From positions 237,101-301,100 of the forward strand of contig OZ287701.1 of assembly GCA_965649825.1 (NCBI GenBank): 64,000 bases of DNA. The letters run 5' to 3'. The DNA comes from Penicillus capitatus. Its lineage: Eukaryota > Plantae > Chlorophyta. Position numbers and translations under genes: made by a program. Under the pieces are notes generated by a model. The model was not told where the DNA came from and did not search any database. It was given only the letters and a program-made list of their open reading frames with translations. Shown here piece after piece: positions 1,475 through 39,538 of this stretch. Numbering within the stretch: the first letter of the stretch is position 1; each line of letters starts with the position of its first letter.

Positions 1475-1606
1475 TGTCGCGTTGTCGATGAACGACACGA
1501 ATACGACGAAGGCGTATCGTTTAACAAAGACTATTCAAACAATAATTTTCTGAATCTATACAACTCTTTGGTCAGCTGCACGAAGGTGAACAGCTGTCCA
1601 CTGACA
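1475..1606 (-). mobile_element. Solo LTR, family 1 (same family as the TRIM LTRs at 19712-20499)
   Basis: Runs TGTCGCG...CACTGACA with 4-bp TSD ACGG (1471-1474, 1607-1610). Shares ACGACGAAGGCGTA, AAAGACT and CAGCTGCACGAAGGTG(G/A)ACAGCTGTCCACTGACA with the TRIM LTR. Confidence 0.85.
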
Positions 1607-2489: not shown

Positions 2490-5400
2490 GATGAATAAGC
2501 ACCGTTCCCCGGAGTTCTGTTTATTGCTCTGTGAGAAACGGAGTCTAAGACACCCCCGGACATAGCTCAACTGCTCTGCACGCGAGCCACCCGTGACGTA
2601 GCCGCTAGGAGACTGTTCCGCGACTACTCGGCGGAGCTCCCGAATCTGCAAGAACACGAACTCCGTGTCGCTTACATTGGTCTCGCTGGGCACCAACCGA
2701 AGGTAGACCAACACGAAGCGGGAACGCTCAACAAGCAGCAGCTGCTGGAAAGGATCACCATATATTTTCTTGAAACGAAGAAGGGGGATGACTCGTGGGA
2801 CGAAGTATCGCAGAAGAGCGACCTTGGAGTCGGAGTCTTCGCAACCGAAGGAACAAGCAGTGGAATCGCAAGATCACTTACGCCCGCCGCCGCACTTCAC
2901 ATTCGGGGGGTGGACGGCATCCCTTGCCAACGGCCTCCAGATGGCACACTTTGCCCTAAAGAAAGCCAAGAGGAAAGGAGAAAGGCATGGGCGACAATAC
3001 GGTTCCATCCCGGCTTGCCTGCTCGAAGAGGTCGCCTCGGCAAGGACACACCTCCAATCCGTCATCCGAGCGCGTAAGAGAGAAGCATGGAGGGAGTTCT
3101 TGATTGACAACAGCATCACCACCAGGGATCTCTGGTCTACATAAAAAAGGCTGACAAAGCCTTCCGGGGTAACGAAGATCGCTTTCCTAACCACTGGGAC
3201 GGGAGAACTTGTGGAAGAACCACCCAAGATAAGCGAAATGCTATTCCAGAAGTTCTTCCCGACCAACCCCAATGCAGAACCGCAGAGAACTTACGCTGAG
3301 ACGTGTCCTCCGCCACCGGTGTCGGTAGCCGAAGCAAGAAGAGCATTTACCGGCGGTAGACTGTCTGCATCCCCTGGTCCTGACGGCCTCCCAAAGACCT
3401 TGATATCGCGCGCTTTCCGGATCTGACCGGAGGTTTTTGCGGCTATCGCCACAAGGTCGTTCCAGTTGGGCTTCCCGCCGCCGTCCTGGCAGCAATCTGA
3501 GGTAATTTGCATACCGAAGAAGCCGAACCCACACAATGAACTGTCTCTACTACGCCCAATAAGTCTCATTGGCTCAGTGACTAAGTGTGTTCACCAGATC
3601 GTGGCACAACGACTGGCCCAGTTCATCGAGTCCAAGAACGGCTTCTCCCCGCATCCCGTACTCAGAACAGCTGAACAATCTCAGACCAGGCAGCAAGCTT
3701 CATGAAGCTCATCGGCAGGCTTGCGTTACTCTTTCCAACAATGCGGCAACTCTCAGCGAGAAGGAACAAGAAAGAGTGAGACGCCAGAGACAGTTTGGAT
3801 TCAAATTCGGGAGAGGCACAGCGGATGCACTGGTGGAATCCACAGATTTCATCGAGCGGAACCTAGGGGCAGGCCGCGAGGTATATGGGGCAGCGTTGGA
3901 CATTAAAGGTGCCTTCGACAGTATCAGACCGACCGCGGTACTGGATGCATTAGAGCGTCTGGACACCCCTCCCTATCTCATGCGCTGGATACAATCCTTT
4001 TTCGGGAATAGAGAAGCCATGCTGGACATAGAAGGAGGATGCTTCACACACTCCCCGTCCATCGGGACCCCGCAGGGAAGCCCCCTATCCCCGTTGCTCT
4101 TTATAATAGGCATGAATCCGATCCTGGAGCTGATAGACGGTTTGGATGGACTTCATGCCCAAGCTTATGCTGATGACATTTTGGTCCTCAGTGCAGCCCC
4201 CTTCCGAAAGGGTAGCCCAGATAAGCTACAAGAGACTCTCGACCGAATGAATACTTGGGCACAAGATATGGGACTGGTCTTCGCACCGGAGAAAATTTTT
4301 CAGATCAGATTTGCGAAACGAAAAAGAAGACGCGACCCCCTCCCAATATTCCTGCGTAGCCAGCAACTCGTGAGGAAAGCTGCTGTGCTTTACTTAGGGG
4401 TATGGCTCGATGAGACGCTGTCCTAGAGTCCGCAAGTGGCCAGTGCAGCTGGGAAAGCCCGTGCGCGCTTGAACTGGATCCGACGAATGACCGAACCGAC
4501 TTGGGGTATGTTAACAGAAGCTGTCGAGAAACTGGTCAGTCGAGTCATGGAACCTGTGGCCTACTATGGAGCAGAAGTATGGCAAGTTGCGGCGTACAAC
4601 GAACGGAAGCTGCCCCCCCCCTGGTGAAAGCAATGCGACAAACCTGTCTACTTCTGTCTGGAGCATTCAGGACTACCTCCTACCCCTCGGCTTACACGCT
4701 CGCGGGCGCCCGCCCGCCCGCTTAACAAATCATACTGATGGGGGTACACCAACGGTTCTGGCCCCGCGGACCGGACACGCTGTCCGCTTCCTGATGGGAC
4801 GGCGGTCCGCGGGGGCCGACGGGTATAAAGCTGACGTCATGCCCTGCCTGTAGCATTTGCATTTGCTCAGGTTCGTCTCTCCGCTTCGCTGTGGCGCGAG
4901 CGCGCCGCGGTGCGTCTTTCGTTTGGCATCCCCGTCACATACAACAAGCGTTGTATTTCGACTCCAGGCGAAGACACAGAGTGCTGGCAAATCCGCTGTT
5001 CTACCAAGCAAGATCAGAACGTTCAGCGGGTCAGTGCTACCCCAGAATCGCATGGTCCCGCTGGCAAAGAGCGAACCCTCGAAAACCACTGGAAATCCTA
5101 CCTCGACAGATCCACCCCTGATCACCGCTCTCTCCTCACCATCTGGGCCTTCTAACAGGCTCCGCCCGACCCCGGACTCCGAACGCCCGGACTGGATACT
5201 GACTGTCTCGACGCAAAAAGACCGAATCCGCCACCGCCTCGGCACTAGCTGGGGACTATCGAAGGGCGACACCCGACATGGTGAAAGCCGGTGGCATCGT
5301 GATTGGACGTCGGCGGAGATCTCCACTCTCGTGGGACTGCGAAACAGTCTGCGCACACTCAGGAAGCTTTCGGCTCAGAAGGCTCAGAATCGAAGACAAA

Positions 5401-6210
5401 GCCTTGGCCTGATCCTGGACCGGGCCGGATCCAAACAGCAGCTCTCAGCTGGACCAACGTTTCAGAGGTCAGCATCCAGGTTCAACAAGAGCTTCTCGAC
5501 TGGTCTCTGGAAGGTCACTCGATCTTTTGGACGACCCAGAAATGGCAACCCGGCTCTCTCTCGCAATGGCAGAATGGCGCCGCGCGACTTCAATCACAGA
5601 GGAAAGTATTCGCGGGCCGAAGGGGATCCCCCGGACAGATCGTGTATCAGACAACGAATCTCGCACTACCTGAATGGCGAGGCGGAAAAAGACATCAGAC
5701 AGAGACTGACCAGCCATCACCTGACCGGCTATCTGACAAATTTCCGGCGTGGGCACTTCCCAGGGAAGTATCTGGAAAGACTTCAGACTTCAAGACTCTC
5801 GCAATTCGCAGCCAACCATTTCCCCTCGAACCAGTACCTCTTCAGATTCGGAGCTCTGGCAGAATCACCGGCCTGTGCATGTGGCGCTGCACTGGAAGAT
5901 AGAGACCACCTACTTATGGAATGTCCACTGCTCCAAGCGGGCCGGAGGAAGCTACAAAGACAGATAGCGGAAACGCTTTCCATCGCATGCATCTTGCAGC
6001 ACCCGAAGGAACTGTCGGAATTCGTAGAATGCATTGGTGACTAACGGCGCCGGGCAGGAAGAAGATGGGGTAGCACCCAGACCAGTCTGTGACTCAGTTC
6101 TCTGACCCAAATGTGACACTCTCTTTTCGATCCATCAATACATTTCCTGTTGTCTAGACGCTCTCTCGATCTTATTAATAGAAAGATGTAAAAGCTTCCA
6201 AACAAAAAAA
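2490..6210 (+). mobile_element. Decayed, 5'-truncated non-LTR retrotransposon (LINE ORF2: RT, RNase H-like region, C-terminal CCHC; I/R1/Tad1-like)
   Basis: RT motifs RPISLIGSVTK, QFGFKFGRGTADAL, LDIKGAFDSI, GTPQGSPLSPLLF, QAYADD and YLGVWLD. Degenerate RNase H-type segment at about 4900-5600. C-terminal CACGAALEDRDHLLMECP. Multiple frameshifts and in-frame stops (3142, 3424, 4424). A-rich tail CAAACAAAAAAA near 6200. Both boundaries are approximate and no TSD was found. Confidence 0.9.
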
Positions 6211-7100
6211 GTCAAGGACGGTGATCCTATCCCATTCTGATGGTATACCTGCTACTGTTTCCTTGACGCTTGTCACCTGGTCTTCCACATTCGATAGTAG
6301 GTGTTCAAAAGGCGAAAGTCGATTATCTTGCGCGCCTTTCCATTGAGTTTTCTATCCTATATCGTAGGGCTCAGGAATACCCTTTCGAGAGGTCTCGCCC
6401 TTCTGATGACGCCACGCAGCTCCATGTCGGTGACACACTGTCGGCTTCTTCACTGGAGACGTCTCCCGATTCATAACGAGCGCCGCTGTTGCAACTTAAC
6501 ATGTCCTCAACGTCCTTGAGCCACTCGATCTCTTTGTGGCAGAGTTTCAATCGAGTGATCGACTTTCCAACGCTGAACATGCCTTGCGAAATACTGCTGG
6601 GAATTTCTGCACCCAGTGATTTAGATCGGCTTTCTGTGCGTGGGCTGAGGTCGAAGCTAACACGAGACTCATTGAAGGATTTGCGTCGTTGCTTTTGACT
6701 TAGTGGACCATTTAGTTGGACCTGCGGTGTTCAAGAAACGAGCGATTCTTGCAACATCGCCCCTCTCACATCGAACTCTTCCAAAAAAACAATCACTTCG
6801 TTCTTGGTAGTTTGCCGGTGTATTGTTAGATGTTTACAAAAAACAATCAAGCATTTTCTCCACCCTTAGTTCACAGCGCATTTCATTATCGCCCGCGGAC
6901 TGTCACATCCTTTCACAACCAAAATCAAACACCAACAGTAGTGTCGGGAAGGCGAAGGAGAGGAGAACATCCAAGTCGACACGACGTCCCTTTTTGTCAG
7001 ACATGACGTGAAGCATGCGTCATGAAATTTGGTATAAAACCGAGGGTTTTGAACTAAAAAATCATCTTTAAAAGACCACTGTCTGTTTACGCACGTCCGT

Positions 7101-7232
7101 TGTCGTGTTTGTCAACGGACAACGGGTTAACGACGAAGGCGTAAGGATTACAAAGACTGTTCGAACAATAATTGTAAGAATTTATGCAATTCTTTGGACA
7201 GCTGCACGAAGGTGGACAGCTGTCCACTGACA
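7101..7232 (-). mobile_element. Solo LTR, family 1
   Basis: Runs TGTCGTG...CACTGACA with 4-bp TSD CCGT (7097-7100, 7233-7236). Both ends match the TRIM LTR (reverse complement). Confidence 0.9.
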
Positions 7233-8615
7233 CCGTTTGCATACAAACCATCCGCGTGACAGTAGTATCATCAAAGTTCGGTTTCCCATCCTTGAGGACG
7301 TGTTACTTTAGGCTCGATTTGCTGTTTACTGGGTTTCGTCGGTGCTCATGTAATTGCAGATGGATTTAACATAATCGACGCTCCGAATGTCGTTCGTCAA
7401 CGACCGTTTTGCTTATAGGTATCCTTTGAAACCAGTCTCGCACAATCGCGCCATTCTCACTCTTGCTTCGAGTTTATCAAGATCGGCATTGAGTATTTTG
7501 TTCAGCTTTTCAGTTTTCGAATCTCCTTAGATGGCTCGTGGAACGAGACGTATGTAGCCGAAATCTCAGCAACCTTCGTAATTTCACGCGGTTGTCGGTA
7601 ACTCGGCGGAAGCACAAAACAAAGTCTAGCAAGGTCTTAGTCCTTTCCTTCTTCAACCTTTGGAAGCGTTCTTCCGACGATAGTGTTGACTTTACTAAAA
7701 GCATACCTTCAGGTTTTGCTACAATGGCTGCCCAATGTATCCGATACTCGTCCTTTCGAGAAAACCGTTCTGGTTTTTCCTCGAAATAACATGTCTTTAC
7801 CTTGTTTATCGTTAATATCTGAACTAGAACGACGCTTGCGATGTATTATTAAGCTGGCAGGAGTGAGCTTATCGATGTGACTCAACAATAAACGGATACG
7901 CGCCTGCCCCGGATTTTTACACGTCGTCACAAACGGAATGAGCCACTCCGATAGCACGCTTGTTCATTTGTCGGAGGACTTTAGCATGAGCTCTCGAAGC
8001 ATACGAACTGACGATATGACTAGGTATATGCAGATAATTGTTGCACAATTAAAACAGCCACGTAGTCGTTCACGTTCAATCTACCCACGTCACAACAGCT
8101 CACACTAAGAAAAACTCTTCACGTTTGTTGATTTGACGAAACAGTGCTCTCCGTCTCGGCATTACTGAACACCGCATACATTTATGGAACCTTGTAATGA
8201 TGCGAGAATGGATAAAGAGAGAGGCAAACGAAACACGTTTGCACCGAGTTACGGCGAGGCATATTCGCGATGGCATCTGTCGAGGGAAAAAACCTACAGA
8301 GCTATGAACTGCCGATAAAGGTAGTCTATTAAAAAACGTTTGGCTTTGACGTAGGTGTTCGCATCATTCCGTTACGGCGCTTCGACGAAATATGACGTAT
8401 TCTGACGTAAACACATGTCATGCCATTGTTTTGCAATGAGATTCCGCGCGGTATGCAGTCTTTTCTCCGTGAAGATTTGCAGAAATGACTCGCTGCGCAT
8501 CACCTGCTCCGTGATTCGGCTACGATAAAAGACGCACCGTGTCGACCAGATGTCGACCGTGAACGCGTTTTCCTCCGCGACGTTGCCGTTTGACTTGTCG
8601 ATTGTCGAGAATACC

Positions 8616-9251
8616 ATGACACGGCTCGCGTTTGGCACAGTCGCTTTTATCTTTGCATTCATGAGCGTCGTCTTCGGACAACCCAACTGCTATTATAATG
8701 CCCTTAAACTCGCCATCACGCGAGACGTGGATAGCTGCGCCGCAGCATGCAAAAACTGTAAGGCTGTCTCTATGATGTGCCTGTCACTGTATCCACCGGG
8801 TTCCTTTTTGGTCAGACACGAGCAACCTCGTCGGACCGTGTTTTGCATTTGTCTATGAAGATTTTAGCGAGGGCTGCAGTGGATATTTTATCGAACGCCG
8901 AATCAGTGAACACCCTCGTTACTCTTATTGTGGCGTCAACTATGAAGCCGATCTCACTTTACCGGTAAACGAAGAATCGGCGCAGGGATCGATGCCTAGT
9001 CCATCTGGGTGCATGATAAATTTTGAAGACCTTGGCACCACTGTTACGGCGCAAGACTGCGAAAACCGTTGTCGCACACGTAAGCCGCAGCAAGACGTAT
9101 TGTCTCTTATGACGTTCATCTGGCGACAGTGGACAGCGGCGTATTTGGCGGATGCGCTGCGTGGTTCTATAATCCAGAAAAAGAAACATGCATGGGTCTG
9201 CTCTCATTCGAAGACTATAGAAAGAGTACCTGTGGACTCCCCCTCCCATAG
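8616..9251 (+). CDS. Small secreted two-PAN/Apple-like protein (PAN-B), 3 exons
   Basis: Same signal peptide, intron positions and Cys skeleton as PAN-A. Ends ...TCGLPLP* at TAG 9249-9251. Confidence 0.85.
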
Positions 9252-10185
9252 ATAGACCACTCTCTGTGTACGAGTGCCACTCCCATTTTCAAGCCACTCT
9301 TCATTTTTCTAGCAGTTCTAAATGAATCAACGTCATCGCGCTCACCATCACCTGAAAGGAGTTCGTTAAAGCTGTTTAGGGAGACGAAGGCATGAGAATG
9401 ACGTTATAACGATGATGACGTTTACCATATCGTTGTAGCCCCTCGTATCATTCATTGACACGCGCATTAACGTTGGACGACAGTCTTTTGCAAACTGCAA
9501 TCTATAACAGATTTGAATCGTTCCCATTTTCAACACTGTCCCTTTCATGCGATAAACAAACAGCCAGGTACAGACTCGGATCTCAGTGAGAACATCTGGC
9601 CATGAAGAACAGTGCATAACAAGGAACAGTCCAGAATTTACGGCACATCCATCACTGAGCACAGAAACATACCGACAAAGTCCAAAAGGATATCTTTCTT
9701 CTCGCTACTCTAACAGACTTGGAGAAAGACTTATTGAGTGACCTTATTCATGACATGCAAGAAAGCATTAGAAATCAACAAAACACGATTCTAAACGATC
9801 GATGCATTCTCCACAGTTTTTTATCCCTTGTCACGGATATGCCATTAATGGCACATGTTGAACAAGTAATTCCACGCGCTTAAGAGTTTTTACTCTATTT
9901 TACAAACCTTTCTTGCGAAATAGAAAAGAAGTTGACAGGAGAAATGTCTCCTTGGTGCATAGGTTCTAAAAATAAGACATCATGAACGACCATCTTCTGT
10001 GACTCGATGATCGTTCATCAATAAGGTTTTGTGATAGACGCCTGTCAGGCAACAGCCGCAGAGGGCGTTTTCTAAACGGTAAAGTTCGTTCCTAGACCCA
10101 TCCATTTCCATATCTTAGAATTTGTTGATGTGTCGAAAGAACCGACTGGGATGTTATTCAGGCAAAGATTGCATTTTGTTATACG

Positions 10186-18994: not shown

Positions 18995-19711
18995 GCATCC
19001 AACGATCCAAACAATTTCTATTTATCATTGAGTTTCGAATGAACCAGACTCTGAACCTTGGCAGAGTCGTGCATGTTTTTCTATTGGGTAAGCATGCGTT
19101 GCAACCGCAAGTATCCTGTTCGACAAGACGATCGAAAAACGTTTCTCTTCGTTTTTCGACTCTGGTAATGAGGGAAATGTGCAAAACGATCAAGATGACG
19201 GCGACGACAACACGACTAATACCGTCTCCGTATGCGAATCTGTTGCTCGTTGGAAAGAGCGCGCATCTTACGACCTGTCTTTATTGTGTCGAAGACAAAG
19301 CTCAGTGATGCCGAAGGACAATTTTCCGCAGTGTTTCAAACGAAGCATATCGATTGTGAGATAACATGAGGACCACCGTTGTAACAGCGTGGTCGTAAAA
19401 ACGCACGTGTTACCATGACGGTGCTCGCGCACCGACGCTCGAACGCTTGCGTACACCGAATCGAATCGAACAAGCACGAACTGTCTCGTCTGATCGTTTT
19501 CTCCAGACGTGATCAGGACTCGTTCAAGAGAGCAAGTAAGCAAGGCCGCATTCATCGATGTTACAGTGGTTCGTCGAAAGCTTCTGTTGTGAAACTGCAC
19601 AGCAAACAACAAACACCGCCACAAGAATCTCCGTGCTTTCATGAGACTATAAAGCTCGAACTGAGAGATGAATAAGTTTGTGTTAATAGCATTGTGTGTG
19701 ACGCGAGGCGG

Positions 19712-20499
19712 TGTCAGTGGACAGCTGTCCACCTTCGTGCAGCTGACACGGGACGCGTCAAATGTCACATCGACGCGTATAAAGACCGAACACTGATTGC
19801 CAGAACAGTCTTTGTAATCTTTTACGCCTTCGTCGTTAACCCGTCCGTTGACGAACACGACATGGTTTCGGAGCGACAAAGATTCCGGCGATAGAATCCC
19901 GTCATCGAAGACTGAAGACTTTCCAAGACACGACCGTGGTGACAGCGTTTTACCTACCACCTGCAGTCTGTAGTTCGTTCCATCGTCCGAGCTGCTGTGT
20001 TTCAGTTCCACCGTCCGAGTTGCTGCGTTTCAGTTTCACGCTGCGATAAGCGTGCTGTTGCGCATTGTTGTGTTTACGTTCGTTGTTACTTTGTCCGTGT
20101 TTACGTTTTTTATCTGGGTCACCACGGACGTGTTGTCGCTGTGAAGTACGGTTCGAATTTCCAGAGTCGGCGCTGAAGTCTCAGAGACGTAAGAGCTACA
20201 AAGCTGCGGCGAATGGGCCGCAGAGGGAGAAGCCACGTGACGATGGCCCTGGTTCGACTCCTGGCCAGCCTGATGACATCCCGACTATCGTGAAATGTGT
20301 TCCGTTCGCATTATTCGGAGTCTGCACAACGGAAAGGGGGTGGGCACATGTCAGTGGACAGCTGTCCACCTTCGTGCAGCTGACACGGGACGCGTCAAAT
20401 GTCACATCGACGCGTATAAAGACCGAACACTGATTGCCAGAACAGTCTTTGTAATCTTTTACGCCTTCGTCGTTAACCCGTCCGTTGACGAACACGACA
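19712..20499 (+). mobile_element. Complete TRIM-type non-autonomous LTR retrotransposon (788 bp)
   Basis: Identical 151-bp direct repeats at 19712-19862 and 20349-20499, each TGTC...GACA. 4-bp TSD GCGG (19708-19711, 20500-20503). PBS-like TGGTTTCGGAGC directly after the 5' LTR. Purine tract GGAAAGGGGGTGGG at 20331-20344 before the 3' LTR. TATAAA inside the LTR. The 486-bp internal region has no gag/pol motifs. Confidence 0.93.
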
Positions 20500-21243
20500 G
20501 CGGACATAACATAATGTTAATCGCGGTGCTTGCATAAGCAAGGATTAGCTCTGTCCCCAAAGGCTTCGGCAGAGCAGTACGGAGGAAAGACAACCTCTTT
20601 TTGCTTAAATAAAGTAACGAAATTATGCAGATGAATAGAGCAAAGATATGGCCGAGACGTTGCCTTAGCAAATGCAGTTGTAGAGATTCGCCGTAAAAGT
20701 AATTAAAGAAACTGTGAACGTCGGCCAGACAGCCGAGTCCGGACCGGATGGCGAATTGCGCAGGGAAACTCCGTCCACAATGTATAATTACATACTTAGA
20801 CGGATACAACAGTACAGTCCCCGTGTAAATACTCAGAATGACGTCAGTCTTCTTTCATGCTATCGTCGTGCATGATGAGCCTCTCGCGCAACGAACGTCA
20901 CAGAGACAATTCTTGCAAGATTTCGGAAGCAATTTATTACCCCTTGCTCGCGACGTGTTTTGCGGCAGGTTCTTTGGACACTCAACTTGAGTTATATCAC
21001 AAATGGTGTTCATCTCTTTCACCAGCTTATTTAACACTACTGAGTCGTCAATACGCCGACCGTTTGCTGTTCATTGACACGTGTTCTCTAAAGATAAACC
21101 GATTAGCGTTGACTGATTGATTGAACCGTTCGACTTCTCTAGACAGCGAAATCGCCAACCGACATGAATAGAAGAGTACTCGCTGCAAAGATCTTGTTAA
21201 CAAACCCGAGATTTGCGTTTAACGTAGCCTCGACAACAAAGAC

Positions 21244-21792: not shown

Positions 21793-21945
21793 TGTCAGTG
21801 GACAACTGTCCGCCTTCGTGCATTTGACCAAAAGGATGTGTCGATGTGACGTCTGCATCTATAAAATCCGGACTAACAACGATTGAATAGTCTTTAAAGC
21901 GATCTGCCTTCGTCATTAACCGCGTCGTTCATCGACAACGTGACA
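21793..21945 (+). mobile_element. Solo LTR, family 1 (diverged; TSD not preserved)
   Basis: Runs TGTCAGTGGACAACTGTCC...GTCGTTCATCGACAACGTGACA. The 3' end matches the 1475 copy. Flanks CTTG and CCGT do not match each other. Confidence 0.75.
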
Positions 21946-22541: not shown

Positions 22542-23599
22542 GAAACCGTCACACTACCGTCTACGTTTGATGAAAAACAACCCAATGATGACAACCATCA
22601 CGGATACAGTGACAATCTAAAAACATCTTGACTTGGTAGTATTGGTTGATTTAGAAGCAGAAGACATCGGTCAACATATAATGCAATGGTAAATGATACA
22701 ATTGTTTTCGTCAAGAGACTGCTATCAAGCATCTCTGTCTTCGGACAGGTGTCCTCTTTCGGGTCGCATAATCGTCAAGCTACTTAAACGCTTCCCTATT
22801 ACCAACTCTGCCTTGTCTGGAGTTTTTCCTGTTGATGGCATCGTATCTCGGCGTCGTTTCCGAGCGTCAAGAGTGCATCGGTTTGTAGACTCCGCTTAAA
22901 TATCGCCGTATAGTAGACTTCGTTTCTCGCTTTCTGTGTAAAGCCAAGCCCAACACAACTATTGTGACTCGCGGTTTACTGAGCAAAGGGGAATCGACAA
23001 GGAGCACCGAAGATGAGCATGCAACCACGCAGCAAACGGTGACGAGGTCCCGGACGAGGGCGCAAATTTCCAGCTGCACGACCCATTAGCAGCATATATG
23101 AGCAGAAAAAAGCGGAGTCCGGAAGCCTTGATGGACGACGACGCGCGAAACTTGAATTTGACTTTCGCAGCGTATAGATGTGAAATCGCGTCTCGGGCCC
23201 AGGACGAAGGGACCGCTTTGACGCCCAGACGACGATCAATGGTGATCGCGGATTACAGGGTAGAAGTTCTCAAACAAGCAGCCAATAATGTCTCTATGCA
23301 AAAGCGGCATGCGCATAAATAATGCCGTCGACTCAGTTTTGCCGCGTCTTTCGAATCGTCACCTGATTGACTTAGGGCAGTCAATCCGTCACTTTAACAA
23401 TAGAGTGGTTGTAAAAACCTTATATGCAACATCTTGCCAAAGACTATTATTCCCTAGAAGCTAACACCATATGTGTTGCTTAACATAACACCCGCAACCG
23501 TCATTGTATTTATGTAGCTCATCAAAGCCTCCACTTGAGGAAAGAAATACGTCGGAGTCATTTAAACGCGATTTCTCTTGCAAGATTTTCTTTTCGACG

Positions 23600-25955
23600 A
23601 TGTAACGTAGAACTGTTAGGACCGAGGGGTGTCGCGAGAGGCATGGGTGCGTCAAGGGCACGAGTAGAGACGAATCGGATGGGTATTCTTTCAGGTAAGT
23701 CTGTACATCGTTATATATCTTAACGTCGCCTCAATCGACAGTGACGTTCCATGCTCTAACAGAACGATGCATTAAGATAGCAAACGCCAGTGTACATGAA
23801 CCGCATTTAAGCGGCATAATGCATCCGTCGGTCTATCGTTTCTCGATTCATAGACTTAGCGGTTCCTTCGAAATGCAGGGCCCAGCCGCTGCCGCTTTAC
23901 TTAACAACAACACCGCCCAGCCAAATGACACTCACATATCCATCGCTTCGGAGCCTGTGTGGTAAAGCTTGCACGAGAAGTACGGCAATAAAGTGCAGGT
24001 AAAATGCCTGACATAGGAACGAAATCAAAAACGGCGCTAGAATAAGCGGCCTCATCAAGACTGCGCCAGACGATGTCATCGAATTTCTGACAACCCACTC
24101 TGTGAAAAGGCTCGGTTCGTTCGTAGTTAAGGTATGATGCATTTCTACTCTCTGAGACATTCACGAGAAATGTTTGTATAAAGCACACAGACGTTTTACT
24201 AGCATTTGGTCAGCAGATCATACTTACAAGGGGATCCGACTCAGTGCACGACCCAGAGTACCAGAGAAACTGGAAAGAAGTCATCAGATCATGTGCCGAG
24301 AAGACAAGCAAACACCGTCGAAGATTCCTGGAAGACAGTGAGTCTTCTTCAACAGAGTCGTGCTCAAAGAGTTTAGCGTAGATTCGTGGGAGGAGAACGT
24401 CACCGTCACTGCCTACGTGGTGAACATTGAGGACGCCGCGGCTAGCCGCAATAATGGACTGCTGTCTCCTCTGGTGCAGAAATCCCATACTGGTGTCGCC
24501 AGCAACGACATCTTCGATCTTCCCGTTGTCCGTGCCATCATCGAGTACAAATGGTGCAGCTGGGCTCGTCCTTATCTGATCATCGAGTTCGGGCTGTACC
24601 TTGGTTGGCTGTTTTCGTTTGTGGCGTTCCTGATCATCTACATCGTACGCCTCGCTTCATCAATTGACCATCACAGGATGTGTGATCTGAAGGAAACGGA
24701 CCTCAGAAAGGACTTTGACGAACAATCAACTTACGGCAGGTTTCTTCTGGTTGTTGCATACATGATGGATGTGCTTTCCGTCGTTCTTATGTCGCCATTT
24801 CTCTTTATTGAATACAAGACGATTTGCTCCTATGGTTTGCGGTGGCTCCAGACGTGCAATCTCATCGACAGCATCGCTTACGTCCTTCAGGTTCTCCCAG
24901 TCACCGTTGTTTCTGCTTTGCTAATGCCTTGTTTGCAGATTGCTGTCTCCTTCCATCATCTCGTCGCAGATGAACATTTGGAGAACAAGCACTATAATAC
25001 GCTCTTGGCTGTGCAATGCGTTCTTCTATTTATCAAGATTCAGCATTTTGGAAGGTATTCATCCTATAAACAGCAGTTTCGGGTAATGATTACCAAAACA
25101 GGGTATTTGGGGCAAAGACCTGCTTCGTGGATCTATTATCCCGCGTCGTTTCTAAAGTTCACTGGTTTCTTGTGTTCATCATTTTGACGATGGTCTCAGT
25201 CGCCCTTTCCCTCGCCGTCCTATACAAAGATGATGCGGTTTGTCTCTTTTCGTTCTTCTTCGTGCGTCCTGATGCAGTATTTCTAGGACGATGGTTTGAG
25301 AACTGCTGGCGATTTTAGCAATGTCATTCGTTCTGTCGTGACTACCTATGCTATTCTGCTTGGACACTTCGAAACAGAATACGTCTTCGACGGCTCGAAC
25401 AAGATTGCGAAGGGTGTCTTCTTACTGTTCTTCCAAGTCATCATGTCCATCACCGTCCTCAATCTCCTCATCGCTGTCATGACGGAATCATACAGAAGAG
25501 TAGGGACGGTTCTCTTGCGTCTAACTAAATGAAGGATTAACGTTCAGGTCGCGACGGAATCAAGGATCATGTACAATGTCGGAAGAGCTCAGCTTATTGA
25601 CGAACTTGAGGTGACACTTCCGAAAAGCTGGGTGCCGAGCTTAAAACCGTTCTGCCATTTTCTCGTGGTTGAGCAAACACCCAAGCAGCAGCGATCTTCA
25701 CGTTCTCGATCACCTCTGGCACGTGTCCTGTCACGCAATAATCCATTGCTGAGCACGGAAGTGGTTGTTGCTCCTTTACTCTCGGAGATTGAGTCCCTGA
25801 AGACCGAAGTGAAAACTTTGACTCGGAACATCGATGTAAGCTTAAACGGACCGGATGATCGTGATGATCGATCACTTCTCTGTGTGTAGACTCTCACCTC
25901 AAAGTTCAACACATTGGTTGAGAGGTTGCCCCCTGCAGCCGCAAATGCTATCTGA
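23600..25955 (+). CDS. TRP-like channel (TRP-3): ancestral 5' end disrupted, remaining exons open (N-truncated gene or young pseudogene)
   Basis: Removing the 23614-23761 insertion restores alignment to the TRP-4 start (ATG at 23600), but with two TAA stops and a frameshift. From ATG 23819/23873 onward all exons are open (pore YAILLGHFE, S6 VLNLLIAVMTES) up to TGA at 23953-equivalent position 25953-25955. Confidence 0.75.
23614..23761. mobile_element. Solo LTR-like insertion, family 4 (148 bp), in exon 1 of TRP-3
   Basis: Terminal inverted repeat TGTTAG/CTAACA with 4-bp TSD GAAC (23610-23613, 23762-23765). Contains TTATATAT. Its removal restores collinearity with the TRP-4 and TRP-5 first exons. 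Confidence 0.82.
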
Positions 25956-26538
25956 ATCACTATTCTGGGCTTTTTGATTACTCTTGTTAAACGATTCTTT
26001 TCTGTGGGCATAATAAAGCTTCAAAATTTTCCAAGGGTAATCATATTATTGCGTACGCCGTTCAGACAGAATCCCTGATACAGAGAATTTCAGTGCTCAT
26101 GTTGCAGCCCATAAGCTGCATTATTAACTGTGTTCTTGTTCTTTTGTCTGTCTTAAGACTTCGACAGCTTTACTCGATATTGTGTTAGCCGCTTCGGCTT
26201 CATCTGTTGTTGTTTTGATGGATACGACTTTGCCGGTAATGCCGGCACAGGAAATCCTTCTGTCATTGTTTCCTTTTTATACATCCTCATCTGAATCCTA
26301 TCTGTCAGTGTATGTCTACCAAAGAGATTGAACATGTACCACATAACGTATTTCGCTGGGGAGTGAATATGCCACAGGCCAACAAAAACGGTTTTTCAAA
26401 GAACAGTTCCAGTAGGAACGTTAAACACGCAGTGTTGTTCTTCTTTCTCGATTTGCTTTTCGAAGCGATAGAGTGACCGAGTGAACTTGGTTGATCAAAG
26501 CAATACGGAAGTGGAAGAGGACTAAATGAACACTCTAG

Positions 26539-27150
26539 TCAAGGCTGAATGAAATTAGAAGTGTCGCGTCCGTGACATCTTTCTAAGAGTATTCCGTGCA
26601 AGCTTTTGTGCGAGAACTGTAAAACCATTCAGCGCATTCGCCTTAGACTTTGATCTCAATTACAAAAGAATGCAGCAATACATATCGAAAATACACAGTT
26701 GCATGGATTAGTTATGGGTCATGCATCTGGATGGCTCCACGAGTTTCTTCTAATTTTCCGACACCGAGTCAAATTTACGAAAGGTAACGGTCAATCGCTT
26801 TAGTTTTAGTTCTCTGGTCCGAATTGTGTTGAATCGCCCGTGCAATGTTGATCCCATAGTTAGCTAGCTCCAGACGACGAATTGGACTTGCAAAGTCAAC
26901 GTTACAATTGAGGTAACCCTCGGGTAACATAACAATATAACGACGTTCTCAGTCGAGAAGAAACAAACGACAAGGGACGCAAAAAAAAGAAATTACACCG
27001 TGTCTGTTTGATTTCCATTCAACACAGGAAGAGGATTCGTTCACTTAAACAACTTCGCATTAGATCCCTTCACAACAGTCTTTGTCTTCGTCAGCGGATT
27101 CACAAACGTTCAAAACAAGTTTGGCACTCTATTTACGATTTGGGTCGTTA
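26539..27150 (-). pseudogene. Decayed paralogue of PAN-C (two-PAN protein)
   Basis: The minus strand reads ANYGINIARAIQHNSDQRTKTKAIDRYLS*I*LGV, versus PAN-C ANYGVGLRVPVRSNSTRGTETEAHGCRLSPIVVGV. It also reads V*GECAEWFYSSRTKACT/ILLERCHGRDTSNFIQP*, versus VYGGCAAWFYNPNNETCTGILSEGVEGRDICGSIRP*. It occupies the same position after TRP-3 as PAN-C does after TRP-4. The 5' limit is approximate. Confidence 0.75.
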
Positions 27151-27696
27151 ACGAAGAAACGCGATATCTAACAGAAGGCTATAGTTTCAGTTTGAGGTCT
27201 TCCGCGATGCAAGACTCTGAACATTAGATACAGTCGACACGAAAAATAGTGCGGGCCACAATAAACGCGAATCTCGAAAAACAGGATTCCGTTAACTAAC
27301 AAGACCGTCGTAGAGTCAATGTAATACGGAAAAGATGATAAAGGGACAAGACACAGAATGGCCCCGACAGATGCTCGTATACGTGTGCTTCAATTGTAAC
27401 ACAAACGAGGCACTTCGGACGTGCTGTTCATCCGCTTGAAATGCTCGATGCAATCAGTTTTGGGAGTAAGCATCTTGGCGTTTTCTTGTTCAGCAGCACC
27501 ATCCTATGTTTGGTTATCCCACCACGACAAGTCCATTGTATGAACTTTCAGGTTCTTGAATAAAAGGAACGTCGACTTAAGGTCGTTGTTTTGTCTTAGA
27601 GTTGTCTGTGGTTGGTGTTCCTTCACGACGTCCTTCCTCTTGGCCATTTAGTTTTTACTCGGCAAAAGTCTTTTTGCACAAGAACTAGGTGAGAAC

Positions 27697-27892
27697 TGAC
27701 GGGTGGACACGAACGGTTTCCAGCCCGCGGACCAGACATATCGCAGCTTCGCGACGTGACGTCCGACCGCGGGCGACCAAGGGTATAAATGATGGTGCGT
27801 GCGCCGACCTGTAGTCTCTGCTTTGACTCAGGTGTCTTCCCTCCGTTCTCGCGACGCGACCGTGGCGCACGTCTCTCTGAAGATTCCCGTCA
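27697..27892 (+). mobile_element. Solo LTR-like insertion, family 5 (196 bp)
   Basis: 7-bp terminal inverted repeat TGACGGG/CCCGTCA with 5-bp TSD AGAAC (27692-27696, 27893-27897). Internal GGGTATAAAT. Single copy in the window. Confidence 0.72.
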
Positions 27893-29324
27893 AGAACCAC
27901 GTAGAATACTCTTCGAAACGAGTGCATGAAAAGTTCGCCGAAATCGAGTTACATCTAAAATTGGAAAGGAGCGCAAGAAAGTCAACAACAGCACTCAGAG
28001 CGCCAACTGAGTTCGATAAGCAAACAAACAACTCAGAGAACAGTTAAATACCTGGCGCTGCTCGGGAACCGGAAATTCCTCCAGAACTTCAAGCAGGTAG
28101 AACTTATCCGCGAGTTTGAGCTAACCAGTGGAGCTCTAGTGGCTCTGCCACAGGTTTCCCTGTGATTAATTGATCCTCTGCTCCACGAGGCTTTAGCTAA
28201 TTGATCCTCTGACACAAATGACTCTGTATCATCCGTTTCGCCAGTGCAAGTTACTATAAAACTCAATGCGCCCCTTTGTCACGTCTTGGCCCTTTTCCTT
28301 AGCACATTGCCCATCCGACGTCCTATTCTTTTCATATAGCTCGAGAATTCTCCTTCATCTGTTGATCTATTTGCGCCCAGTATTGCAACATCACGTTTTC
28401 AGCCTAGGAAGATTTTGTCAAAACTCTTCCTCTTGGAATCGTTCGTGCTCTTGTGTGGCAATCATGTGTCACGCCACTGAAGAAAGTCGACATGCGATGC
28501 GTACTCATTGCGTTGTTGAAGAACATTGGTGACCTGAATCCGCGGATATATAAAGAGGCCAGATCTCTCCACACGACGACTTTGTGTACTGTTGCAAGTG
28601 GACACGACCGCCAGTTTCGTCTTCTTTCCTAGTTCAAGTTGTTTTCCGAATGGGTCTTCATATCTTCGTTATCTGGACAAGGCATGTAAGAACAAAAGAT
28701 ATCGGTCGGTGTCTCTCGGATTTCATTGGAAGAGATCGAACCGAGCTTTTCCCAACCGATATTCAAACATTGATTCAAATCCAATCACGTGCGCAATTTT
28801 ATCCCTCGGCTATGATTGTAAAGTTGTGCTTTTCTCCTTGTTCCCGATAACAAACAGAGATCATTGGCCACGTGGAATCTAAACCCACCAACGTGCAACA
28901 CTCGGGGGTTTTCGAGTCTCTTTTACTTGGACGTTATGGACAAAGGTTCAGAGTAGAGAATTATTGCGCAATCGAGGGGATACAGAATTTCTAAGGCTTC
29001 CTGCTTTTGGCAAGAGCACTCAGGGAACCAGTTCTGTCAGCATCCAAACGTAACTCGCAAGAGCAAAGACTGATCAACGATGACGATGGTCCATTACGTC
29101 GGCATAAAGCGATGCGAAGAAATGCGACGTGTCGTAAGGCATGTAACTTATTACAGTTGATAGGCAAACGGGTCCGCCAAGAATGCGACGATTGGCACTT
29201 ATGAAGCCGTTGTGTCGATAGATAGGTGTTTTAGTTAAGGTTTAGTAAGTAGTTGTGGTAGAAGCTCCGTCCTAGGTCTGGGTTACTCCAACGCAACTCT
29301 CCCTTGTAAGGTTTCCTTCTAAGC

Positions 29325-31524
29325 ATGGCACGCTTCACGATGCGTTACGGCAGCAAACGCTACGAATCTCTACATCGCGCGTTTGAGCACCAAAGCGTGT
29401 CCATTATTCCTCGGTCGGTATTCTCAAATTCTATGGAAATGCCGGATATGACCATTGTGGAATCAATCGAGGACTTCGACTCCCAGTCCGACTACACTAG
29501 CTCATCCACCGTTTCGGAGTCCATGTGGTAATACCTATACTAAACGTTGTCCATGAGGTGTCAATGAAACGTCTGACTTCAGGAAGGCCGTACGACAGGG
29601 AGCCAGAATAGGTGACCTAATCAAGACTGCTCCAAAGGAAGTCATCAGCGTGCTAAAAAGCCACGCAGTAAAAAGATTGGGTTCTTTCGATGTGAAAGTA
29701 TGGTGCACTTTTTACTCTCTGAGGCACTAATGCGATGATTCTGCGAAGGACACGGACGTCTTACTGGCCTTTGGCCAGCAGATCATGCTCACGCGGGGAT
29801 TCGACACAGCGCGGGACCCAGAGTTCCAAAGAAACTGGGAAGAAGTCATCAGATCGTGTGTCGAGAAGACAAGCAAACGCCGTCGAAGATTTCTGGAAGA
29901 CAGTGAGTGTTCTTCACCAAGAGCTTTGCTCAAAGTCTTCTGAAGATCCGTGGGAGGAGTGCGTCACCGTCACTGCCTACGTGGTGAACATTGAGGAAGC
30001 CGCGGCTGGCCTCAAGAATGGACTGCTGTCTCCTCTGGTGCAGAAATCCCAGATTGGCGTCACCAGCAACGATATCTTCGATCTTCCCGCTATCCGTGCC
30101 GTCGTCGAGTACAAGTGGCGCAACTGGGCTCGCCGGTACCTGATCATCGAGTTCGTGCTGTACCTTGGCTGGTTGATTTCGTTCTGTGCATTCTTGATCA
30201 CCTACATCGTACGTCGCCTCTCGCTTAATCGATTAACGATCAAGAAAGCGTGATCTGTAGGAAGGGGACTTGAAAGAGAGTTTTTCCGAACAATCACCGA
30301 AGGGCAGGTTCCTGAAAGCCGAAGCATACCTGATGGATGTGCTATCCATCATTTTTATGTCGCCCTTTCTTTTCATTGAATACAACACAATTTGCTTCTA
30401 TGGAATGAGGTGGTTCCAGACGTGGAACCTGATGGACAGTATCGCTTACGTCCTTCAGGTTCTCCCAATCGCCTCCGATTCTTCTTGATAATAACTGGTT
30501 TGCAGTTTGCCATCTCCTTCTATCACCTCCTTGCAGACGAGCACATGGAAAGCAAGCACTACGATACGCTATTGGCTGTCCAATGTGTTCTTCTCTTCAT
30601 TAAAGTACAGTATTTTGGAAGGTAACTCTTACCCCACAAACAGCAGTTTCGGACAATGCCTGTGCTCAACAGGGTTTTCGGAGCGCGGACCTCCTTCATG
30701 GAAGTGATAGCTCGCGTCCTGTGTAAAGCTTACTGGTTCTTCGTGTTCATCATTTTGACAATGGTCTCAGTCTCTCTTTCCTTCGCCGTCCTGTACAAAG
30801 ATGACGCAGTATGTCTCTTTTCCCTCTTTTCTGTGCACCCTGATGCAAGTATTTTAGGATGATGCTGTGGATACTGCCGACGATTTTCGGAATGTCATTC
30901 GTTCTGTTGTGACCACATACGCCATTCTGCTTGGAAACTTCGAAACCGATTACGTCTTCGATGGCTCAAACAGGATTGTGAAGGGTGTTTTCTTTCTCTT
31001 CTTCCAAGTCATCATGTCCATTACTGTCCTCAATCTCCTTATCGCTGTCATGACAGAAGCCTACGGAACAGTACTGTCGGTTCTCCAGATGATCACTTGG
31101 ATAACAGTCTGCATGCAGGTCACGACGGAATCCAGAATCATGTACAACATTGGAAGAGCACAGATAATGGACGAACTCGAGGTGGCACTTCCCAAGAGCT
31201 GGGGACCGCGCTTGAAACCGTTTTGCCATTTCCTCATGGTTGAGCCAACACCCAAGCAGTAGAGTTTCTCGAGTTGTCAATCACGATAGCAGAGTGTCCT
31301 ACTCCACAGGGATTCATCTTTCAAAGAACAGGGGGGCGCTGTTTCTTTTACTTCCGAAGAAGGAGACTGGCGGGATGAAGTACAGTCTCTGAGGAAGAAA
31401 GTTGACGTAAGCTTGATTATACATGGTACCAGTAAAAAGATTGCTTGTCTGTTTGTAGACTCTTACTTCACAGCTCAACATATTGGTTGAGAGGCTCTCT
31501 CCTGCAGTCAATAACGCTCTCTGA
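29325..31524 (+). CDS. TRP-like 6-TM cation channel (TRP-4), apparently intact
   Basis: Starts MARFTMRYGSK; LPAIRAVVEYKW, pore YAILLGNFETDY, VLNLLIAVMTEAY and MYNIGRAQIMDELE. GT-AG introns at conserved positions. TGA at 31522-31524. Confidence 0.9.
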
Positions 31525-32109
31525 TGCATTATTCTGTGGATTTTTGATATCTTTTGTCCGATTATTTATCTCTGTGGCAATTATGGAGTTCAAGACTTTT
31601 AAACAGACTTACCATTTTGGTGTGCAGTCGACTTGGACAGAAAATCCCACACATAGAATTTTCCGACGTTCGTGTTGAAATCTATCTATTTACTCACTTC
31701 CTACTGTTATTTTTCCATTACCATCTCTGTGGTTTCGACAGCTCTCTCGACACTAAGCGTAAGCACGCTAGTTCATCTGTGTCTGCACCGACGGAGTTGG
31801 CCTCGTAGACAATTCTCATTCCAAGTGGGACTGTTATGTCAATATCTGATCTGCATCCACCGTCTCGCCGGACGTTTGCCAAAGAGATTGGACACGTATT
31901 GCACACAACATAACGTTCTCATTACTGCGCGAATGTGCCACAGATCAGTAAACACGAGAATGATACTCAAAGAGCAATTCCAGTAGGAACGCCAAACACT
32001 CGGTGATCTTGCTCGATTGGACATCTGAGCCGATATAAGCCGAGTGGGACTTGGTCGGTCAAAGCAATGTGAAAGAAGAGGACTGGATAATCAAACAACA
32101 AGTCTCCAT

Positions 32110-38689: not shown

Positions 38690-38842
38690 TGTCGTAGGGA
38701 TCAGCTGTTAGCTTCGCTGTCGTACCATCTGGACAGCTGTCGCCTTCTGAGTCACATCAACACCTAGATACTTATACGCGCCCCTATATTGAACTCTGCC
38801 TCGTTTGTAACCATTCGGTGTTTGTGGCTTCCTACCTCGACG
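38690..38842. mobile_element. Solo LTR-like insertion, family 2 (153 bp)
   Basis: Runs TGTCGTAGGG...CTACCTCGACG with 5-bp TSD CGCAA (38685-38689, 38843-38847). About 90% identical to 1290-1444 by eye. Confidence 0.88.
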
Positions 38843-39387
38843 CGCAAACCTTTGCGTTGTTGGTCGGTCGACAAACCGTCACACGTTATTAGCCGAAAAA
38901 GAGATGTTCCAACGTACAAACGCGTGAATCACTGTTAGACGCTGTGAGTATGCGAAACCTGGATCCGAAACCACTTTATCAAAATCGATGATAAATCGCG
39001 CAGAAAACGCTCGAGAAACTTAAACGCTTAAAAAGGGACAGCTCAGATCGATCGAAACAATTATACTTGTTTCCTTCGGTGTGACTCACATGATCTCGAC
39101 AACTAGCTGACGACACACTTCGATCGAGGCACGTATCCATCGCCTCGGTGTGTCGGGACACTCTTCGCAATTCTTTGTTGTTCTTTGTAAGCTCATTACT
39201 CGAGCTCTGAGAACAAGATTGGCGAGATTTAATCGTCCGATGGCGGTATAACCCAAAGCATGACGACGTTTTTAAATCGGAAAGTATGGAAGTCACTCTA
39301 ACCAAGGACAAATACGCTCGCGCTCTAGCAAGGCCACTAAACCTGCAGCGATCGTTTTACGTCCGATGAAGATTGATCTATTGGCTT

Positions 39388-39538
39388 CGTCGAGGTAAGG
39401 CGACAAACACTGATGGATTACAAACGAGGCAGAGTTTCTACAGTGGACGCGTTTAAGTATCCAGTTGTCGATGTGACCCGGAAGGGGAGAGCTGTCCAAG
39501 GAGTACGACAGCAAAGCTAACAGCTGCCCCCTACGACA
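39388..39538. mobile_element. Solo LTR-like insertion, family 2, inverted orientation (151 bp)
   Basis: Runs CGTCGAGGTAAGG...CCCCTACGACA with 5-bp TSD GGCTT (39383-39387, 39539-39543). Confidence 0.85.

Follow-up and report, generated by a model that had tools for sequence, protein, structure and literature searches.

The window analysed here, a stretch of DNA of 64,000 nucleotides, contains at positions 19712-20499 of its forward strand a compact unit of 788 bp in total, and the questions raised by this locus are what kind of mobile element it is, whether it has moved in its present form and which machinery would have moved it. We assign the unit with high confidence to the TRIMs, which are protein-less miniature LTR retrotransposons. 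According to Gao et al. 2016 (PMC4717578), a TRIM is shorter than 1,500 bp, is represented by at least two complete copies with different TSDs and encodes no retrotransposon proteins; here three copies of 788, 900 and 781 bp were found, with three different TSDs and with no retrotransposon protein. The hallmarks of LTR retrotransposons are present as well, namely repeats with TG...CA ends, a TSD of fixed length, a PBS that begins with TGG after the 5' LTR and a polypurine tract (PPT) before the 3' LTR. What is new is this particular TRIM family; its class and architecture were already known.

Anatomy and coding content of the element

A preliminary description of the locus had reported two 100% identical LTRs of 151 bp, a TSD GCGG, a PBS-like site, a polypurine tract and a non-coding interior of 486 bp, and all of these are present. 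The 5' LTR (19712..19862, + strand) and the 3' LTR (20349..20499, + strand) form a direct repeat of 151 bp that starts with TGTCAGTGGACA and has TG...CA ends (TGTCAG...CACGACA); by repeat finder and by script, the two are identical at 151/151 positions and the identity extends for 0 bases beyond either boundary. An exact repeat of 151 bp is beyond chance, and its length, which had been called unusually short, is in fact typical of TRIMs. The two copies of the TSD, both GCGG on the + strand, lie directly outside the 5' LTR (19708..19711) and the 3' LTR (20500..20503).

The PBS-like sequence TGGTTTCGGAGC (19863..19874, + strand) abuts the 5' LTR, starting at the first base after it. This site and the next 13 bases are identical in 3/3 full copies, and outside these copies no further exact TGGTTTCGGAGC occurs in the sequence of the window and loci that was examined. 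At the other end of the interior, the polypurine-tract-like GGAAAGGGGGTGGG (20331..20344, + strand), also identical in 3/3 full copies, is followed by CACA up to position 20348 and then by the 3' LTR.

Near the 5' end of the LTR there is a perfect palindrome of 16 nt, GTGGACAGCTGTCCAC (19717..19732), which is found again in the 3' LTR at 20354-20369. Every LTR of the family has it, either intact or with 1-2 substitutions, and it might have a role, for example, in the binding of integrase or of a transcription factor. A TATAAA motif (19778..19783, + strand; LTR positions 67-72) is a candidate promoter element at the end of U3; it is invariant in the three full copies and lies inside a segment of 22 bp that is absent from the 132-bp solo LTRs of the family. 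The interior includes a segment (19928..20133, + strand) delimited by an inverted repeat of 16 nt (19928-19943 and 20118-20133, 15/16 complementary), which encloses a tandem repeat of two 28-bp units (19977..20032, + strand) whose number varies among copies. Folding of the interior RNA is no better than that of shuffled sequence (z = +0.79), and a structural role or a packaging signal in the interior thus receives no support.

The ORFs of the 486-bp interior are short and unconserved. Among the ORFs overlapping the element, the Pfam scan covered the one at 19271-20011 (- strand), which encodes 247 aa and runs across the 5' LTR and about 150 bp of the interior; it has no Pfam match. The neighbouring ORFs tested contain neither a retrotransposon protein nor any other Pfam domain.

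Copies, solo LTRs and their genomic surroundings

The comparison of the family covered the window and nine loci, which together amount to about 190 kb from this genome and related ones. Additional full copies were reached with a protein probe taken from one reverse-strand frame that is open through the LTR, whose matches are other TRIM copies only, followed by DNA comparison. One of these copies (L003, 10009-10908) is 900 bp long and lies on a contig of 954 kb with 41x coverage; its two LTRs, of 151 bp, differ at no position from each other or from those of the window copy, and its TSD is CTGC. The other (L004, 2896-3676) is 781 bp long and lies on a contig of 12.9 kb with 18x coverage; its LTRs are mutually identical at 148/149 positions and its TSD is CCGT. 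Coverage elsewhere is about 40x, and the lower value of this contig (18x) may reflect a region specific to one haplotype. L003 and L004 are other contigs of the metagenome sample containing ctg340429, the independently assembled counterpart of the window, and their flanks are unrelated to the flanks of the window copy.

The interiors of these two copies are 95-98% identical to that of the window and differ from it mainly in the number of 28-bp units. In particular, the L003 interior carries 9 substitutions and four extra units (+112 bp; 6 vs 2 units), and the L004 copy is about 95% identical overall to the window copy. Since the three loci share interior, PBS and PPT, and have unrelated flanks and different TSDs, the non-coding form has integrated at least three times. 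The possibility that all copies lie within one segmental duplication was also considered and is contradicted by the unrelated flanks. The reading of the element as a TRIM, put forward in the preliminary description together with a search for further interior copies as its check, has passed the structural tests and this copy test as well, the interior being present at two other loci with their own 4-bp TSDs, in addition to solo LTRs that also have their own.

Three further LTRs of the family are found in the window: a solo LTR at 7101..7232 (- strand, 132 bp, about 73% identical to the TRIM LTR, TSD ACGG/ACGG), a solo LTR at 1475..1606 (- strand, 132 bp, TSD CCGT/CCGT) and an isolated LTR at 21793..21945 (+ strand, 153 bp, about 69% identical, with no intact TSD, CTTG / CCGT). 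By BLAST and alignment, these are 69-87% identical to the TRIM LTR or among themselves, and they share the first 34 bases or so (at most 2 substitutions, including GTGGACAGCTGTCCAC) and the terminal ...GACA; TG...CA ends are present in every LTR of the family. The two solo LTRs at 1475-1606 and 7101-7232 are 5.6 kb apart and 87% alike over an 86-nt repeat. They were considered as the ends of one autonomous element and rejected as such, because each has its own TSD (CCGT and ACGG); the DNA between them contains no gag, protease or integrase.

A scan of a prokaryote genome collection with a 30-mer of the LTR gave matches at three places (L005-L007), all in one record, OZ245997.1. The family LTRs at these loci are solo or disrupted, with ACGG/ACGG as TSD in L006, CCGT/TCGT (3/4) in L005 and ATATA in L007, together with one interrupted family LTR without duplication. 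The 30-mer and a 23-mer spanning the LTR end and the PBS were also searched for in JGI metagenome contigs, with 0 matches, and 0 matches to the family were found in the viral contigs scanned. Perfect 4-bp TSDs flank 3/3 full copies and 6/10 LTR units of the family, the chance of at least 6/10 being 7e-13; these duplications indicate that the responsible integrase makes 4-bp staggered cuts.

The record OZ245997.1 deserves attention in its own right. It is described as 'MAG: Putridiphycobacter sp.' chromosome 1, of 6.93 Mb, and its three loci have a GC content of 47-50%. Their genes are of eukaryote type: a Thi4 gene beside a family LTR (closest PDB entry 1RP0, which we take to be the Arabidopsis enzyme), ubiquitin and NB-ARC-TPR. 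The window and its relatives are of eukaryotic origin, and this is the one public genome record found to share the LTR family. Although assigned to the Bacteroidota as a MAG, it seems to contain eukaryotic DNA and was probably binned or labelled wrongly; the window itself may derive from this record. This labelling problem may matter more than the TRIM itself.

The context of the element is eukaryotic: the RUVBL1 gene of L003 is split by a 46-nt GT-AG intron, and DNAJC11, RWP-RK, a LINE RT and a low ORF density were also observed. RWP-RK is not known from animals or fungi, and its presence together with that of a THI4 of plant type speaks against an animal as host. However, the same context includes Spond_N, C-type lectin, trypsin, Kunitz and polycystin-type channel domains, and we regard the host simply as a protist or an alga.

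Several other features of the window and its relatives were recorded. Polycystin-channel-like genes are present as tandem copies at about 17.4-18.7, 24-26, 29.7-31.5 and 35.4-37.4 kb of the window, and exact look-ups of two genes of this array returned no record. The contig ctg340429 is about 15.4 kb longer than the window somewhere within 22551-31892, which probably reflects a difference in copy number in the tandem array between haplotypes or assemblies; the identity between the two is 99.97% near the TRIM and 99.1% across 31.9-52.5 kb. A search with an exon of DNAJC11 gave three matches, one of which led to L008 (ENA ERZ26696514, ctg303721, 162x), a locus of a related species in a second metagenome sample. 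L008 is syntenic with 34.5-52.3 kb of the window (nucleotide identity 74-87%) and carries a single polycystin-like gene, adjoining DNAJC11; no LTR of the TRIM family was found in its 20 kb. Possible poly(A) signals (TGTAA, AATAAA) were also looked for downstream of genes and showed no pattern.

Other repeats surround the solo LTRs. Between the two at 1475-1606 and 7101-7232 there is a LINE-type remnant (3581-6041, + strand), with an RVT_1 domain at 3581-4423 (E = 2e-27), a weak zf-RVT at 4854-6041 and a reading frame that is split into several parts. The LINE remnant and both solo LTRs are enclosed by two direct copies of a sequence of about 950 bp (2-951 and 8590-9546), which are 87-96% identical and lie 8.59 kb apart; they could represent a segmental duplication or the LTRs of a larger, older element. 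At 38690-39538 lies a unit of about 850 bp with inverted repeats of 154 bp (81-83% identical), which start with TGTCGTAGGG and contain GGACAGCTGTC, a motif common to the palindrome of the TRIM LTR. A third copy of the 154-bp repeat (1288-1462, 91% identical) adjoins the solo LTR 1475-1606; the 850-bp unit could represent a TIR element, or else a pair of LTRs from a related family in inverted orientation.

Proposed transposition cycle, age and alternative explanations

The steps by which the element would transpose follow the standard cycle of LTR retroelements, of which the anatomy, the three integrations, the solo LTRs and the non-coding interior are the observed part. Transcription by pol II would start in the 5' LTR downstream of TATAAA, acting as the putative promoter, and end in the 3' LTR, and the RNA would be packaged in particles supplied by an autonomous LTR retrotransposon that resides in the same genome, that is, mobilised in trans. 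A host tRNA annealed at TGGTTTCGGAGC would prime the minus-strand DNA and the purine run GGAAAGGGGGTGGG the plus strand; two strand transfers would regenerate identical LTRs, and the integrase of the partner would insert the TG...CA ends at a 4-bp staggered cut. A TSD of 4 bp points to an integrase of Ty3/gypsy type or similar.

The identity of the primer can be approached through pairing. The preliminary description had counted one mismatch and one G:U pair against the PBS consensus of plant iMet, TGGTATCAGAGC, and its arithmetic is correct: of the 12 positions of TGGTTTCGGAGC, 10 would form Watson-Crick pairs with plant iMet, 1 would form a G:U pair and 1 would be mismatched, in a comparison that uses a consensus from other organisms. 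The mismatch falls at tRNA position 72, near the priming end, where the PBS implies A72 plus A73. Eukaryotic initiator tRNA has U72. A tRNA 3' end fully complementary to TGGTTTCGGAGC would be ...GCUCCGAAACCA, with A at position 72, unlike the canonical initiator tRNA, and a tRNA of U1:A72 type (Glu- or Asp-like) would be an equally good candidate primer. The window and the nine loci contain no tRNA gene, and a literature search for the PBS string returned unrelated primer matches only.

As for the partner, no autonomous element sharing LTR ends, PBS or PPT is present in the window and the nine loci, about 190 kb. An isolated ORF of 379 aa with Integrase_H2C2 and rve domains lies in L003 (4108-5244, - strand), with no LTRs around it and directly downstream, on the same strand, of an ankyrin-repeat region (5384-7691). 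It may be a decayed element of gypsy type or a captured integrase; a gypsy/retrovirus-type integrase thus exists in the genome, as this fragment. The partner might also be absent from the genome, with its machinery coming from a very different element.

The age of the insertion was examined by comparing assemblies and copies. The window and ctg340429 (ENA ERZ25074695; 724 kb, 39x) are 99.8-99.97% identical; in the latter, which was assembled independently, the insertion is present, its LTRs are identical and the interior differs by one SNP (window 20110, T vs C). The T is private to the window, C being found in the ENA copy of the insertion and in both other full copies. The insertion is thus in both assemblies compared, and a search of the window and loci with its flanks joined gave no match that could represent an empty site. 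The preliminary description had called the element very recent, which is plausible, although the age is loosely bounded, since 0/151 differences between the LTRs gives only K < about 2%. Comparison of the window copy with that of L003 gives 0/302 differences in the LTRs and 9/486 in the interiors, all of these being transitions (Fisher p = 0.015). Identical LTRs with interiors that differ at 9/486 positions imply that these two copies do not derive from one very recent source transcript, and we read this pattern, seen in the alignment of two copies, as evidence suggesting more than one source lineage. Its best explanation would be a tighter constraint on the LTRs than on the interior among successfully transposing copies. 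Altogether, the family has probably been mobile recently.

Four other explanations have to be weighed against that of a recently mobile TRIM family. An artefact of assembly, or a local tandem duplication of 637 bp, is the least credible of them, and its probability is close to nil: mis-assembly can yield exact repeats, and the tandem gene array nearby differs by 15 kb between assemblies, but the presence of the insertion in an independent assembly shows that it is not an assembly artefact, the same structure recurs at two other loci, and TG...CA ends with PBS, PPT and a TSD of 4 bp at every locus are not what a tandem duplication would leave. The check for such an artefact, which had been indicated in the preliminary description, has thus come out in favour of a true insertion. 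It is also very improbable that the unit is the dead remnant of a one-off internal deletion in an autonomous LTR retrotransposon. Internal deletions of LTR elements are common, and there is no partner with which the unit could be compared; however, two other loci, whose flanks and TSDs are different, carry the interior at 95-98% identity and with unchanged PBS and PPT, and this recurrence implies that the deleted form itself transposed repeatedly. We give just as little credit to a special element with LTRs that contain a ribozyme or originated from the gene of a small RNA, as in Cassandra, Helenus/Ajax and retrozymes, which make up the remaining known classes of LTR elements below 1 kb (PMC10886601, PMC5680766). 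Against it, Rfam returned no family for the element on either strand even at E<=1, ARAGORN found no tRNA-like sequence in it, and the TATAAA of the LTR fits a pol II promoter.

A fossil TRIM family, in which the partner has decayed or been lost and nothing is moving now, is possible but on balance doubtful. In its favour, no intact autonomous element was found and the sole integrase is an isolated fragment; the insertion is common to two assemblies whose nearby sequence differs by 0.03-0.9%; the LTRs of the family are for the most part old solo copies, with identities of 69-87%; and there is a precedent in Echinococcus multilocularis, in which ta-TRIMs persist with no intact lennie, their gypsy-like candidate partner (PMC4558846). 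On the other hand, all 151 bp are the same in the four LTRs of two loci and the LTRs of the third copy differ at 1/149 positions, which argues for insertion within K < about 2%, and the absence of a partner means little when about 190 kb were searched. That the host belongs to a protist or algal lineage beyond land plants, animals and the few algae catalogued for TRIMs, and that at the same time the family is transposing now, is a combination that we regard as rather unlikely; if true, the family would provide a minimal LTR element that can be tracked, with LTRs more constrained than the interior and a fast-evolving 28-bp repeat inside. The recently mobile TRIM family that we prefer is, in any case, a clean one, with repeated and probably recent transposition, and the element could serve as an insertion-polymorphism marker in the host organism.

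Comparison with known miniature LTR elements

TRIMs of plants were reportedly first described by Witte et al. in 2001, and they have been surveyed since (PMC4717578). The element described here resembles them in being shorter than 1 kb, in its TG...CA repeats in the range of about 100-250 bp, in the placement of PBS and PPT, in the lack of ORFs, in the occurrence of solo LTRs and in its varied TSDs. It differs from them in the length of the TSD (4 bp here, 5 bp in plant TRIMs) and in the PBS, which departs at two positions from the mostly iMet-type TGGTATCAGAGC of plant TRIMs. There is no sequence similarity between them, the interior found here (486-598 bp) is at the long end, and it contains a 28-bp repeat of variable number. 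The preliminary description had stated that TRIMs are known mostly from land plants and animals, and these groups do account for part of the record, the animal hosts including ants, bivalves and mosquitoes; TRIMs of green and red algae (Chlamydomonas, Volvox, Chondrus) are also on record (PMC4717578).

Other non-autonomous elements are comparable in part. LARDs are likewise LTR elements mobilised in trans, but they exceed 4 kb and have a long, conserved non-coding interior, whereas the element found here is 0.8-0.9 kb long. Cassandra, Helenus/Ajax and retrozymes are, like it, sub-kilobase non-autonomous LTR elements; however, neither the 5S sequences of Cassandra, nor the tRNA and snRNA sequences of Helenus/Ajax, nor the hammerhead in the LTRs of retrozymes were detected here.

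The closest functional analogue, on the likenesses that follow, is the Echinococcus ta-TRIM. This element, which belongs to the ta-TRIMs of taeniid cestodes, has 4-bp TSDs in 52/57 cases and abundant solo LTRs with TSDs, and lennie shares with it LTR ends, PBS and TSD length (PMC4558846). The two families have in common predominantly 4-bp TSDs, solo LTRs with their own TSDs, a PBS abutting the LTR and a presumed mobilisation of Ty3/gypsy-like type. The ta-TRIM differs in that its PBS, of 8 bases, corresponds to tRNA-Leu, its host is a flatworm and a candidate partner has been identified; the two families show no sequence similarity.

The ant PbTRIM (PMC3532108) and the TRIMs of bivalves (PMC6934838) are similar to the present element in architecture and size class, and differ from it in sequence, which is unrelated, and in host group. 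These ant and bivalve elements indicate that TRIMs arise repeatedly by reduction of LTR elements (PMC3532108, PMC6934838), and the family described here adds one independent origin of miniature LTR elements.
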